Below are positions 31,827 through 37,708 of a stretch of DNA of 64,000 nt, piece after piece. The notes beneath the pieces were generated by a model. It did not search any database, was not told the origin of the DNA, and saw nothing but the letters and a program-made list of their open reading frames with translations. The position numbers and the translations under genes are program-made. The stretch spans positions 160,854 through 224,853 of the IMG/VR virus record IMGVR_UViG_3300020473_000013; one strand, written 5' to 3'. The stretch's first letter is position 1. The number at the start of each line of letters is the position of its first letter.

Positions 31827-31995
31827 TTTTTGCAGTCTATAATTTGTTACCATTGCAGCGATTCGAGGCTTGCTCAGAAGACCAACGCCGATTTCTGCAT
31901 TTGGTAATTTTAATGCAACGCACGATAAGTAGCGTGCATTTTTGCCGCGGCCCTAATCAGGGTCGCACCCTCCAACCTTCATGATAGGAACCGCT

Positions 31996-33936
31996 ATGAA
32001 AAAGTCCAACGTTACTCTCCGGGGTATCGTGGTCGCGGGCGATTCTCGGCAAGAAGCTGAGGATAACTACCGCGCTGTGGCTACTGGCGTTTCGGTGAAG
32101 GCGCTCCAGGATAAGGACAACGAGTTTGTCATTCTGAGCAACGCCGATTCCGAGCTGACCCTCATGAACCCGCTTAGCGGCGACATGAACCTGGTCGAAG
32201 CCAGTGACCTGCAGAACGACCACTTCGAGTTTCTAGCGTCCGATAGCGACGAGACGGTGACTACGCACTACACCCTCTGCGCCTCCGGATGTGGTTCGCA
32301 CATCATCGCCGATGATACCGAACTCATGGAACGCTGCCCCGTCTGCGCTTCCACTCTCGAAGACCTCAGCGCTGATGACATCGAGGAAGCCCTCAACGCC
32401 GAAGCCTCCGACGAGGAAGAGGAAGACTTCGATGAAGAAGTCGAGGCCTCCGATGACAGCAATGAAGGCGTCTCCACTCCTCTTCTGGTGGTGGCCGGTT
32501 CGTACAACGATGCTGTCGAAGCGTTCCGCTCCATCGCTAGCGGCGAAGCCGATACCGAAGGCTATGACTGTGGTGGCCTGACCATCGTGGCCGACGCAGA
32601 CTCGGACATCCAGTACAGCCCGTACAACGCCGAAGAAGCTGTGGCGTCCGAAGCTCCGGAAGGCTTCTCCGTCGAGGCTTCCACAAACGGCGATTACGCT
32701 GCTCACTGGTACATGTGTGCCAGCGACGAGTGCGGTGTTCATGTCGTGGCGTCCGATGATGAGCCCGTTTTCTGCCCCGTGTGCGCTTCAGGCCTGATCG
32801 AGCCTGACGAGGAAGATCAGCAGGAAGACGAGGTTACCGCTTCCGCCGAGGACGACGAGGAAGACTACGAGGCCGAACTCGAAGACGTGGCTCTGGCCGG
32901 CGACGACGAGGATGAAGAGGAAGACGAGCCCGACGACGAAGACGATGATGACGAAGACGACGAGGAGGATGACGACGAAGACGAAGACTTCGACGACGAG
33001 AACTCCATGTCTGTCTCCAGCGTCACCGTGGAAGACGACGAGGAAGACTTCAAGGGTGAAGCCTCTGCCGAGCACGAAGAAGCCGCAGCGTCCGCAGCTT
33101 CGGAGCCCGCTCCTCTGGAATCTGTGTCCACCGACCTGCTGGCGCTTGCGTCCGCTCAAGGTGAACTCTCCGTCGACCAGCTCGAAGTGGCGTTTGCCGG
33201 AGACATCGCTGGCGAGAGCACCTGGGTAGCGTTCCATGGTGGTAAGCCTGTGGCCACCGTCACCGCGTCCGGCACCAGTGCTCAATCCGAAGTCTTCAAT
33301 TCCAACGTATTCAGCAATCTGGTTCATGCCTCCGCTTCCGAGCAAGGTGTGAGCGCTGCGCTGGAGGAGCTGGGCTTCAAGCCGATCGAGGCATCCGTCG
33401 AAGTCGATTCCTATGTACAGAATGAAGTCTCCAGCCGAGTCGAGGCCGGTGTTTCTGATGTTCGTAGTAATTTCGAGAAGTCCAGCAGCGATCACGCTGC
33501 TCGCTTCGAGGCCGCCCTGGCGACCGCCGCCACCGGCATCAACAAGGGCTTCTTCGACAACGTGAACAACCCTGTTAAGGGAGCCCTCGTGGCCACCATG
33601 AGTTCTCTCGGTATCCGGAACCCGGAGCGCGTCGTTGCCTCGGCATTCGCCAAGCACAACGAGCAATACCTCCGCAATCTGGTCGCCAAGGCGAACGAGA
33701 TCATGGACTACGACGTGGAAGTGCAGAACCAGCTCACCAAGGCTGTCGCTTCTACTGCCGAAGAGCAAGTCGCTACGGCCAGCGCCGGTGAAGGTGAACA
33801 CCTGCCGATCGGCAAGCCCGTAACCTCCGCGAAACCCTCGGCCCGCCCGCAGGAAGACGCACCCTCGCAGGAAGCCACTGCATCCGCCGGCCCGAACCTG
33901 GACGCTGTTCTGGGTACCCTCGGCCGTCGGCGCTAA
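31996..33936 (+). CDS. Capsid scaffolding/core protein with two zinc-ribbon repeats and acidic tracts
   Basis: HYTLCASGCGSH...CPVCAS and HWYMCASDECGVH...CPVCAS; long D/E runs; lies between protease and capsid genes. Confidence 0.7.
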   Translation: MKKSNVTLRGIVVAGDSRQEAEDNYRAVATGVSVKALQDKDNEFVILSNADSELTLMNPLSGDMNLVEASDLQNDHFEFLASDSDETVTTHYTLCASGCGSHIIADDTELMERCPVCASTLEDLSADDIEEALNAEASDEEEEDFDEEVEASDDSNEGVSTPLLVVAGSYNDAVEAFRSIASGEADTEGYDCGGLTIVADADSDIQYSPYNAEEAVASEAPEGFSVEASTNGDYAAHWYMCASDECGVHVVASDDEPVFCPVCASGLIEPDEEDQQEDEVTASAEDDEEDYEAELEDVALAGDDEDEEEDEPDDEDDDDEDDEEDDDEDEDFDDENSMSVSSVTVEDDEEDFKGEASAEHEEAAASAASEPAPLESVSTDLLALASAQGELSVDQLEVAFAGDIAGESTWVAFHGGKPVATVTASGTSAQSEVFNSNVFSNLVHASASEQGVSAALEELGFKPIEASVEVDSYVQNEVSSRVEAGVSDVRSNFEKSSSDHAARFEAALATAATGINKGFFDNVNNPVKGALVATMSSLGIRNPERVVASAFAKHNEQYLRNLVAKANEIMDYDVEVQNQLTKAVASTAEEQVATASAGEGEHLPIGKPVTSAKPSARPQEDAPSQEATASAGPNLDAVLGTLGRRR

Positions 33937-34696: not shown

Positions 34697-35797
34697 ATGA
34701 CTCAACCGTACAAAGGCGCACGTATGGTGCTCGCCAGTGGCGATCCGATCGAAGAACTGCGCTTCGGCAACTCCAACCAGCGCGCGCTCGATCCGAAGAC
34801 CGGCGAGTTCAACGCCAACGACAAGGGCGAACTGGTCAATGCCATCAGCAACCTGATGTCGGCCTACGCCAGCGGTGAAGTTCGCGAACAGCAGCCTGCC
34901 GAGATGTCCAGCGCCGAGATTTCCGAAGCTCGTCGCGAAGTTCTCGCCAGCGCTCTGAACGACGCTACCGGTCAGGAGTGGGCAGCTCTGGGTTCCGGCC
35001 TCGCTCGCCAGATCGACTCTGAGACCAGCCGTCAGGGCTTCCTGCGTCGCATCGCTCAGGGCCAGACCCTGCGCCAGGGTGAAGTGCCGCGTGTTCCGAT
35101 GCCCGCGCACGACAGCATCGCCATCGTCGCCACCAACGCTTCGTCTGTCGGCTACCAGACCATCCGTCAGCGCGTGTTCACTCCGGACGAGTTCGAGATT
35201 CAGGCGAACGTCCGCGTCGAGAACCTGGACATCGAACAGGTGAACGGCGATCTGCTGGAGCACGCCTACAACGACGGCCTGCAGGCTGTGATGGTTCAGG
35301 AAGACCGCCTGTGGAAAGACGCTGCTGACAAGACCGTCGGTGTCGTGAACGATCTGGAGTACATCGCTGGCGAGCTGACTACCCGCAACCTGGGTAATCT
35401 GCGTCAGGCCGTGGCCCGCTGGAACCTGCCGGTCAACACCGCCATCATCAGTAACGACTACTGGGCGGACATCATCGGCAGCCAGGACTTCGCTACCTTC
35501 CTCGATCCGATCACCAAGTACGACTTGGCTCTGAACGGTCAGATCGGTACTCTGGTCGGCATGCAGCTCCTGACTGACGCCTTCCGTCAGCCGAACCAGA
35601 AGGTCCTCGGCAGCGGCGAAATCTACGTCGTCGCCAGCCCGGAGAACCACGCTGCCTACTCCACCCGTGGCGGCATCCGGTCCACTCCGACCTCCGGTGC
35701 CAACGCCGGTAACAGCACGCGCGGCTGGTTCATGACTGAGCCGTTTTCTTTTGTACTCGCCAACAGCCGCTCCGTGGCGAAAGGCAAGCGGGTCTAA
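34697..35797 (+). CDS. Major capsid protein (HK97 fold)
   Basis: 366 aa, extreme codon bias; RQGFLRRI..Q.L.QGEVPR, QEDRLW, GQIGTLVGM; position after protease and scaffold. Confidence 0.85.
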   Translation: MTQPYKGARMVLASGDPIEELRFGNSNQRALDPKTGEFNANDKGELVNAISNLMSAYASGEVREQQPAEMSSAEISEARREVLASALNDATGQEWAALGSGLARQIDSETSRQGFLRRIAQGQTLRQGEVPRVPMPAHDSIAIVATNASSVGYQTIRQRVFTPDEFEIQANVRVENLDIEQVNGDLLEHAYNDGLQAVMVQEDRLWKDAADKTVGVVNDLEYIAGELTTRNLGNLRQAVARWNLPVNTAIISNDYWADIIGSQDFATFLDPITKYDLALNGQIGTLVGMQLLTDAFRQPNQKVLGSGEIYVVASPENHAAYSTRGGIRSTPTSGANAGNSTRGWFMTEPFSFVLANSRSVAKGKRV

Positions 35798-35837
35798 TCT
35801 CCCGACCCGGAGATACCGAGCACGATGTAAAGAGTAC

Positions 35838-35921
35838 AGGGTATCGTGAGGACAAGGCCGGCCAGCCCTGTCGCTTCCCTGAGTGACTAACTCACGGTAC
35901 CCTTCTTATTGTTTCAGGGGA
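35838..35921 (+). ncRNA. Structured leader RNA (three-way junction, copy 1) upstream of the endonuclease
   Basis: P1 35838-35850/35891-35903, GAC, P2, P3 GTCGCT/AGTGAC, TAA; loop CCCTGA is complementary to TCAGGG at the RBS. Confidence 0.6.
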
Positions 35922-35929
35922 CAATCATC

Positions 35930-36943
35930 ATGCGAAGCGATTTTTATGTCTATGCACTTCTCGATCCGAGAAAGCCAGGCAAGTACCGTTACGGTAAACT
36001 CAGGTTCGACTATGAACCGTTCTACGTCGGAAAAGGATGCGGTAAAAGGCACGACGCTCACTTCAAGGTAAATCCTTCGAAGGTCTACAACAAGTGGAAG
36101 GATCGGAAGATACGTCGCATTCAGAAAGAAACAGGAAGCGACCCTATCGTCCGTATTTTGAAACGCGACGTTGTAGAGTCAACTGCCTTCCGCCTCGAAG
36201 CTAAAGCCATAGGGCTGATAGGGCGCAAGGGATCAGGCCCTCTCACCAACCTTACAGACGGCGGTGAAGGAACATCTGGCAGAGTGGCTTCCGCTGCTCA
36301 GCGATTGAAGAATGCGGCTTCATGCCGTAGAGTTCGATTGACCATGCCTAAAGGTAGACAGCAGCTATGGTTCAAGAGAATATCCGAAGCCAGCAAGCGT
36401 AGAACGCTAGAAGAACGGGCAGCACTCAGCAAGCGGTATAGCGACATCCAGCACAACCTGCCGGAAGACGTTGACGCCAAACGCCGTGCAGCTCTATCCA
36501 AGTCGAACAAGCGGTACCGTGAATCTATGACGGAGGAACAACGCGAAGCCGAGTCGAGAACCCTGTCCAGTGCAGTCTCCCGATATTGGGAATCAGCATC
36601 CGACGAGGAACGAAAGTCTCGCAGCGACGCGATCCGCCGTGGGTATGCCTCAAAGGCCAGATCGGAAGTAGAAGCAAAGAACCAGAAGATTGCCAATGCC
36701 ATCAAGCAACAACACAGCTCAGCCTCTCCGTTTGACAAGCGGATGCGTAGCTTCAACGTGATGGCAGGTGTCATGGTTCGTAACAGCGTTAACTCTGGCG
36801 AGATTGATCCTGCCGATGCGGATACGATCAAGGCACGCCTCAAAGTGTCTGCCACCAAGTTCTACTCGAAAGAGCATAATTTGGAGCGTGAACCCAAAGC
36901 CCTTCGGGAAAAGGTTCGCAACGTTATCGCCCAGTATGCGTAG
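35930..36943 (+). mobile_element. Free-standing GIY-YIG (LEM-3-like) homing endonuclease gene
   Basis: FYVYALLDPR...PFYVGKG.GKR..AH, LTNLTDGGEG, then helical NUMOD-like repeats; atypical A-rich codon usage. Confidence 0.85.
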
Positions 36944-36976
36944 CCATAAATATCGCTTCGTGTGTTGATTTTTCCT

Positions 36977-37225
36977 GACCAATAGGAGGAGATAATATGT
37001 GCTTCTAACATTGGCAGGTATCTCCTAAAGATCATTGGTCGTTAGACCGCACCGAGTGCGAGCACCCTGCGAGGACAAAGCACCGTAGCTTTGATGCTGT
37101 CTAGTCACATGGATTCCAGCATCTAACTCGCAGGGCGCTCCCTTTCTCTCGGGTGATCTTGTGTCTTGGTCGTAGCAAGCTGTCACGCCCGGGAGCGACC
37201 TGCGGCCAAGATTGTGCAAAGGGAG
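36977..37225 (+). ncRNA. Multi-domain structured RNA (hairpin, three-way-junction copy 2, crossing helices)
   Basis: At least six complementary pairings within about 250 non-coding nt (see findings). Confidence 0.6.
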
Positions 37226-37234
37226 GATAGTCCT

Positions 37235-37708
37235 GTGAATAAAGCGTGCGACCTTTTCGCACTAGCCATTACTGCCTTCAAGGAAGGTAAGTACGACTCC
37301 GCAGCTAAATTCTTCTCCTCCGCGATGGGGTCTGATGACCTCGACTCGTTCGTGAATGACATCGCCCGCAACGTTCCACGTTCGGCGCTCACGGGCCTTG
37401 TACCTTCTTCTGAAAACACACTGTCGCCGTCTCTGGCTTCTGCTGACTCTGAGGACCTTTCCTACATTGTCGAGCGGATCGAAGCTGGATTCCGGGCCGA
37501 GTGCTCTCTCCTTGATGAGGGTGATGAAGAAGCCGAGGTTCGAGCGTCCGATGAGGACGAGGATGATGACCTTGACGAGGAGGACGACCTCGACGATGAA
37601 GACGACGATGACCTCGATGCTGAGGACACGGAGTTGGATGACGAGGAAGACCACAACTCTGGTAAGATGAAGCTCACGGCGTCGGCTGGTCCTGTGCGAT
37701 TCAAGTAA
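37235..37708 (+). CDS. Acidic hypothetical (head-associated?) protein
   Basis: GGGAGG RBS then GTG 37235; D/E tract; LASA, RAS and TASA motifs. Confidence 0.7.
   Translation: MNKACDLFALAITAFKEGKYDSAAKFFSSAMGSDDLDSFVNDIARNVPRSALTGLVPSSENTLSPSLASADSEDLSYIVERIEAGFRAECSLLDEGDEEAEVRASDEDEDDDLDEEDDLDDEDDDDLDAEDTELDDEEDHNSGKMKLTASAGPVRFK

Follow-up and report, generated by a model that had tools for sequence, protein, structure and literature searches.

In the 64,000-nt stretch of DNA analysed here (the window), which derives from a 225 kb jumbo-phage contig, the major capsid protein gene (34697-35797) is followed on the + strand by a structured RNA element (35838-35903, copy 1), a small hairpin (35908-35925), a free-standing GIY-YIG homing endonuclease gene encoding 337 aa (35930-36943), a second structured element (37060-37140, copy 2) and an ancestral post-capsid hairpin (37163-37212). 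The capsid protein is 68% identical to that of Pseudomonas phage PaBG and 63% identical to that of Lu11, placing the phage near these two, although a megablast search of the region against cultured phages returned no match. The endonuclease assignment rests on a Pfam LEM-3_GIY-YIG domain (PF22945, E = 2.3e-8) and on matches to PHROG families annotated as homing endonuclease. The stop codon is followed by a 25-nt tail (CCATAAATATCGCTTCGTGTGTTGA, 36944-36968) that is conserved in three related loci, L002, L004 and L022 (compared loci are designated by L and a number), more loosely in L012, and is absent from the endonuclease-free locus L003.

Two three-way junctions at the endonuclease locus

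An earlier note had described copies 1 and 2 as covarying versions of one three-way-junction RNA bracketing the endonuclease, and this observation is confirmed. The minimum-free-energy and centroid structures from RNAfold are the same three-way junction for both copies, at -31.6 kcal/mol (z = -4.0) for copy 1 and -40.1 kcal/mol (z = -6.0) for copy 2, and none of 200 shuffles folds as well. The shared junction pattern GAGGACAA-N20-50-TAACTC occurs exactly twice in the window, against 0.01 expected. The bracketing is literally true, as copy 1 ends 27 nt before the ATG at 35930 and copy 2 starts 117 nt after the stop at 36943. Some details of the pairing given in the note require correction. The hairpin AAGGC/GCCCT of copy 1 has an A.C mismatch, leaving only GGC/GCC plus an outer A-U pair, GTCGCT/AGTGAC contains a G.U pair, and the 14-bp stem of copy 2 has one A.C mismatch. 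The promoter-like motif TGTAAAGA (35826-35833) ends 4 nt, not 7 nt, before the first stem. The sequence TGTAAAGAGTA is conserved only in the two closest relatives and is not recurrent in the window (9 matches at up to 2 mismatches against 8.2 expected). Together with the absence of any sigma-70-like site on the + strand in 35600-37400, in a phage group whose promoters are unknown, this leaves the promoter idea without support.

In copy 1, the 13-bp helix P1 (35838-35850 with 35891-35903) closes a junction composed of J1/2 (GACAA, 35851-35855), the P2 hairpin GGC-[CGGCCA]-GCC (35856-35867, extended by A35854-U35869 across the A.C mismatch), the P3 hairpin (35870-35887, with 35870-75 paired to 35882-87 and a loop, L3, of sequence UCCCUG at 35876-35881) and J3/1 (UAA, 35888-35890). 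Copy 2 contains the corresponding P1 (37060-73 with 37127-40), GAC, P2 (37077-81 with 37088-92), P3 (37093-99 with 37117-23) and UAA, and it scores 59.3 bits with a covariance model of the family (R1, described below), making it a good family member at the level of the junction. It differs, however, in its P2 sequence, in its 17-nt P3 loop, and in being followed by neither a partner hairpin nor an endonuclease gene. Complementary runs of 5-8 nt to its loop exist, but shuffled sequence gives runs of at least 6 nt in 98% of trials. The exact 20-mer of its P2 region occurs only in this contig within the viral collection, and the relatives that carry the same endonuclease (L002, L004, L006 and L022) have only the upstream copy, with just the ancestral hairpin after the endonuclease. 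Bracketing is therefore peculiar to this genome rather than a property of the element. Copy 2, separated by only about 20 nt from the ancestral hairpin, is most simply a relic of another cassette or a solo junction, although a role in processing cannot be excluded.

Neither copy matches a known RNA family. A search of the whole window against Rfam 15, which includes the hammerhead, twister, twister-sister, pistol and hatchet ribozymes and known riboswitches, gave 0 hits at gathering thresholds, and at E ≤ 10 the only hit in 35700-37300 is a chance match outside the element. No relevant hits were obtained for the family member of Burkholderia phage BCSR5, and in nine other loci the only hit is a neighbouring group I intron in L113 (RF00028, 83.8 bits), where the cassette lies just 3' of the intron. 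Literature searches found no description of the element, and Weinberg 2017 does not mention endonucleases, although a 2023 catalogue of more than 10,000 viral structured-RNA candidates (PMC10690425) may contain it unnamed.

An RNA family upstream of homing endonuclease genes

Comparison of 31 loci encoding related capsid proteins shows that the RNA belongs to the endonuclease cassette and not to the capsid gene. Six of these loci, the window's own included (with L002, L004, L006, L008 and L022), carry a related GIY-YIG gene, and each has between the capsid stop and that gene a three-way junction with the near-identical centre AAGGCCGGCCAGCCCT. About 20 loci lack the endonuclease; these have a plain hairpin instead and give no hit with the covariance models. 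L003 and L004 are 92% and 99% identical in the two flanks, but 91 nt in L003 are replaced in L004 by about 1.28 kb comprising the junction, the endonuclease and the conserved tail.

The covariance model R1, built from seven sequences, found two further members upstream of GIY-YIG genes, one after a clamp-loader gene (L095, 42.9 bits) and one in an AT-rich phage (L040, 22 bits). Scans with the exact P2 core word extended the set to 31 stretches in the viral collection and 39 in the metagenome collection, of which the model confirms about 18 and 17, respectively, many of them redundant. All 17 exact 20-mer matches in bacterial and archaeal genomes score 25 bits or less and are thus chance words in G+C-rich genomes. 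One cultured phage, Burkholderia phage BCSR5, carries an unannotated member between its tail-tube gene and a DUF7487 gene, at about 149,343-149,411 of MW460245.1. In total, the family is found in more than 20 distinct viral and metagenomic contigs and in BCSR5. In a 24-sequence model alignment, 92.6% of cells are paired and 21 of 23 pairs change on both sides, including all 13 pairs of P1 and all 6 of P3; none of 500 shuffles reaches the observed values, and slid controls give 31-48% paired. The P2 pairs change on both sides in copy 2 and L040. The consensus is P1-GA(A/C)AA-GGC[CGGCCA]GCC-CU-P3-UA(N)-P1, in which the junction G-A and U-A letters are invariant or nearly so and the 17- to 20-mer around P2 is identical in most members while P1 and P3 have turned over completely. 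The apparent invariance of P2 is partly due to how members were found, as the family was collected largely with an exact word from this hairpin.

The GAC and UAA segments that face each other at the end of P1 in copies 1 and 2 recall the UAA/GAN and UA_handle junction motifs, the latter described in PMC2615604. At the level of sequence, the UAA/GAN requirement is fulfilled in copies 1 and 2 and in L002 and L004, but most other members have UAG, UAC or only UA, with UA(G/C) opposite GAA, and a hairpin (P2) is inserted after GAN. Any correspondence in non-canonical pairing or three-dimensional structure would be conjecture from sequence.

Every complete ORF after the RNA is of a homing-endonuclease type, excepting the orphan copy 2, which has none downstream. 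These comprise GIY-YIG proteins, often with NUMOD3, in about 15 distinct loci, HNH proteins of the I-HmuI kind in L129 and L164, DUF723 (PHROG 559) in L137, DUF7487 (PHROG 3339) in BCSR5 and a ParB-like nuclease in L133. The genes upstream differ and encode major capsid, tail sheath, tail tube, baseplate wedge, baseplate hub, large terminase, Holliday-junction resolvase and clamp loader. Not all relatives of the endonuclease carry the RNA. Of 80 loci encoding related GIY-YIG proteins, the models find it in about 8, and a descriptor scan suggests about 5 more variants with a different P2. The scan found candidates upstream of 16 of the 80 loci, against 4-5 of 80 in control regions, and a second model (R2) did not pick up the AT-rich variants among them.

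Loop complementarity at the Shine-Dalgarno sequence

The part of the element not seen in the earlier note is a fourth hairpin, P4, about 10 nt downstream of P1. In the window, RNAfold of 35838-35935 predicts P4 at 35908-35925 (AUUGU 35908-12 with ACAAU 35921-25), with a loop, L4, of sequence UUCAGGGG at 35913-20. The segment CAGGGG (35915-20) of this loop is complementary to L3 and overlaps the Shine-Dalgarno sequence AGGGGA (35916-21). Across the family, L3 is complementary over 6-7 nt to a strand lying 4-17 nt after P1, directly in front of the rest of the Shine-Dalgarno sequence, and the two partners covary. UCCCUG and CAGGGG in window copy 1 correspond to CCCCUAG and CUAGGGG in L002, UCGCAC and GUGCGA in L006, CUAGUAC and GUACUAG in L008, CCCUAAU and AUUAGGG in L095, CCGUAU and AUACGG in L113, CCGCAAU and AUUGCGG in L142, AUAUUGC and GCAAUAU in L129, CUCUAAC and GUUAGAG in L137, and CUCGUAU and AUACGAG in BCSR5.

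The best cognate run has a median of 6 nt and is at least 6 nt in 20 of 24 elements, a length reached by only 4.7% of non-cognate pairs. With a stricter loop definition, none of 20000 permutations reaches the observed mean run or the observed duplex energy (-6.7 against -3.3 kcal/mol). A column-based count on a MAFFT alignment is only moderately positive, with 57% paired at slide 0 and 73% at slide -1, because that alignment splits into two registers; the per-sequence permutation tests were relied on instead. The flanks of the partner strand pair over 3-5 bp (for example AACU/AGUU, CAAC/GUUG, UCAC/GUGA, UGUC/GACA and GCCU/AGGC), with at least 3 bp in 20 of 23 members and a mean of 3.7 bp against 2.4 bp for non-cognate flanks, a value not attained in 20000 permutations. 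The L4 strand ends 6-15 nt before the ATG and is followed by the rest of GGAG or GAGG. The Shine-Dalgarno sequence is therefore split, its 5' half lying in L4, opposite L3 in the predicted pairing, and its 3' half in the 3' strand of P4. The distance from the junction to L4 is nearly constant at 22.8 +/- 2.8 nt, and P1 averages 12.7 bp, close to the 11.8 bp of P3 plus the predicted kissing helix.

A predicted translational leader and its alternatives

The best-supported reading, in which we have reasonable but not full confidence, is that copy 1 is the 5' leader of a mobile homing-endonuclease cassette and most likely represses translation of the nuclease. In this model, the long, sequence-variable P1 closes a junction that presents L3 for capture of L4, such that an intramolecular kissing loop together with P4 would bury the ribosome-binding site. 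The nuclease would then stay poorly translated even on abundant read-through transcripts, here those of the capsid gene, and P1 would close off the fold from flanking sequence so that the module works wherever the cassette lands. The analysis itself establishes the structure and its covariation, the L3-L4 complementarity, the position of the Shine-Dalgarno sequence, the association with endonucleases and the presence/absence polymorphism of the cassette. Formation of the kissing loop in vivo, repression of translation, and the arrangement of P3 plus the kissing helix alongside P1, such that a short linker is enough, are inferred from sequence, without expression, probing or toeprint data, and binding of any ligand by the core would likewise be an inference from its conservation alone. 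Every L3 nucleotide would be used in the kissing helix, which is sterically tight, although such complexes occur, as in ColE1 RNA I/II. A simple hairpin would moreover be enough for attenuation, and the invariant core therefore implies a further function that this explanation does not cover.

The interpretation in the earlier note is thus partly supported. The element is an unannotated structured RNA with real covariation and no Rfam match, the GA/UA junction singled out there is the conserved part of the family, and of the two proposed links, to the endonuclease or to the capsid operon, it is the former that holds. With P4 and the L3-L4 complementarity, the likely role becomes sequestration of the ribosome-binding site, rather than the generic possibilities of operator, processing signal or nuclease-associated RNA offered there.

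Cis-acting occlusion of the ribosome-binding site is already established for T4-type homing endonuclease genes, where hairpins directly upstream of I-TevI, I-TevII, I-TevIII, segB and mobE of Aeh1 pair with the Shine-Dalgarno sequence and limit translation from read-through transcripts of the host operon (PMC2988022). The element described here likewise has its Shine-Dalgarno sequence within a conserved, predicted pairing. Those structures are single hairpins specific to each gene and are relieved by an embedded late promoter, whereas here the partner of the Shine-Dalgarno sequence is the loop of P3 in a three-way junction, no embedded promoter is evident, and a sequence-invariant core is shared across unrelated nuclease families and phage lineages. 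The layout also resembles cobalamin riboswitches, in which a loop of a multi-helix junction domain kisses the loop of a downstream hairpin in the expression platform (L5-L13; PMC9600662), but there is no sequence or Rfam similarity, the element is much smaller, at about 90 nt, and no ligand is known or suggested. The lariat-capping (GIR1) ribozyme of twin-ribozyme group I introns provides another example of a structured RNA with a junction and tertiary pairing that lies immediately 5' of a homing endonuclease ORF and conditions its expression. That RNA is eukaryotic, about 190 nt, derived from a group I intron and catalytic, and nothing here indicates catalysis.

The conserved core raises the possibility, tentative on present evidence, that the leader is a ligand- or factor-responsive switch, an extension of the above model rather than a replacement. 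The junction/P2 core would be a receptor for a small molecule or a universal host factor whose occupancy sets the angle of P3 and so makes or breaks the kissing loop, as in cobalamin riboswitches. About 20-25 nucleotides are invariant while all surrounding helices have turned over, and the same core precedes five unrelated nuclease families in phages with 46-66% G+C, which argues for a universal partner and not the endonuclease itself. The architecture of a junction-domain loop complementary to the loop of a ribosome-binding-site hairpin also matches that of cobalamin riboswitches. On the other hand, the gene context suggests no candidate ligand, as selfish nucleases have no metabolic link, no conserved alternative (ON-state) pairing was found, and more divergent members (copy 2, L040, the AT-rich subfamily and L201/202) keep the architecture with a different P2, whose conservation is in any case inflated by the exact-word searches. 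The core may instead serve tertiary folding. It remains a concrete lead to a ligand or protein partner, and if such a partner exists, the element would be a new riboswitch-like class that times the translation of selfish nucleases of several unrelated families across many phages.

Other readings fit less well. An RNA processing or stability element, in which P1, alone or stacked on another helix, is cut by RNase III or another nuclease to separate the endonuclease mRNA from the capsid transcript and free the Shine-Dalgarno sequence, as in the lambda N leader, is unlikely. P1 is long (9-16 bp) and stable and lies between a highly expressed gene and the endonuclease, the two junctions of this genome could excise the endonuclease message, and processing sites of T7 and lambda, as well as the lariat-capping ribozyme, provide precedents. 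However, P1 is shorter than the roughly 20 bp RNase III usually needs and is only 5-8 bp in some members, the second junction is unique to this genome, and a new self-cleaving ribozyme finds no support in ribozyme family matches, even at E ≤ 10. A branched intrinsic terminator or insulator of the capsid gene, behind which the endonuclease merely sits, is less likely still. P1 is followed by a U-rich stretch in the window and its closest relatives (UCUUAUUGUUU, CUUUUGUU), and the hairpin after the capsid gene of endonuclease-free relatives is in some cases a classic terminator, but the U-tract is not conserved across the family, in which the linker is instead pyrimidine- and A-rich and G-poor, and a terminator scan calls neither copy. 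The RNA also follows the endonuclease to eight different upstream genes and is absent after capsid genes that lack an endonuclease. Neither the processing, the ribozyme nor the terminator reading explains the covariation of L3 with the Shine-Dalgarno region.

Free-standing homing endonucleases are among the commonest selfish genes in phages, and how they avoid harming the operons they invade is known only for a few T4-type cases. The RNA marks endonuclease cassettes and their 5' boundaries in metagenomes and could become a new Rfam family, and its compact size and presence in the cultured host-phage pair of Burkholderia phage BCSR5 mean that a predicted intramolecular kissing loop that would hide a ribosome-binding site can be studied directly. 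As a portable, conserved leader shared by GIY-YIG, HNH, DUF723, DUF7487 and ParB-like nuclease genes at many insertion sites, it suggests that expression control is a module that travels with, or is exchanged among, these cassettes.

Sequences flanking the capsid gene and endonuclease cassette

Upstream of the capsid gene, the window encodes a very acidic 651-aa protein (31981-33936) with two similar Cys-pair (zinc-ribbon-like) segments and long Asp/Glu runs. This protein has no Pfam match and is probably scaffold-related. A 25-nt sequence lies directly after the endonuclease stop codon (36944-36968; CCATAAATATCGCTTCGTGTGTTGA). It is conserved in the related loci L002, L004, and L022, more loosely in L012, and is absent from the endonuclease-free locus L003. 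Between this tail and copy 2, the second three-way junction of the window, lies an imperfect hairpin (36975-37045) in which a strong Shine-Dalgarno-like AGGAGGAG pairs with UAUCUCCU and an AUG opens a 3-codon ORF (MCF*). This hairpin may be the remnant of another regulated gene start.

A long hairpin follows the capsid gene (or the endonuclease cassette) and precedes the next gene in PaBG-like phages, as observed in the window (37163-37212) and in loci L002, L003, L004, L006, L009, L012-L021, and L028. The stem varies, but the apex is conserved, reading GGAGAGCGCCCUCC, AGGAGCGCCCCU, or, in the window, CUGUCACGCCCGGGAG. The hairpin looks like a separate conserved RNA element.

Other three-way junctions and the P2 loops

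A three-way junction is also present in L030 (5129-5208), a capsid relative without an endonuclease, with GAC and AUA at the junction. Its P3 loop contains CUCCU, an anti-Shine-Dalgarno word, and it sits upstream of the native gene that corresponds to window 37235-37708. The covariance models do not match it. In L201/L202, loci that carry an HNH endonuclease gene, a different three-way junction precedes that gene, about 90-20 nt upstream of the ORF start (L202 1201). Its P3 loop (AUUCAGCA) matches both UGCUGAA and the loop AGCUGA of a hairpin that holds the Shine-Dalgarno sequence. The architecture is the same as that of the family, but there is no sequence similarity to the family core.

A variant subfamily was found upstream of GIY-YIG genes in AT-rich phages (L046, L065/L066, L105, and L108), with the sequence GACAG-P2-UUCCUGAAA-P3-AUUA. 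In these loci, the Shine-Dalgarno region (GAUAAGG or GUAAAGG) is complementary to the 5' strand plus loop of P3 (CCUUAUC or CCUUUAC), and the pairing would therefore compete with P3 itself. Across the family, the P2 loops (window 35859-35864 and relatives) usually contain a 4-nt palindrome, GGCC, GAUC, UGCA, or AGCU, an arrangement that, with too few independent types for a test, could mean loop-loop dimerisation or could be trivial. Copy 2 (ACCGUA) has no such palindrome.

Genomic settings of two family members

In L113, a locus in which the junction RNA precedes a GIY-YIG gene, a complete group I intron (RF00028, 83.8 bits; L113 7354-7643) lies about 160 nt upstream of the RNA and its gene. 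This member may be intron-associated; the interrupted host gene was not identified. A further member occurs in a cultured phage, the 227 kb Burkholderia phage BCSR5 (locus L199, 2487-2575; MW460245.1, about 149,343-149,431). Here the unannotated RNA lies between the tail-tube gene and a DUF7487 protein that is annotated as hypothetical but that PHROGs files with homing endonucleases.
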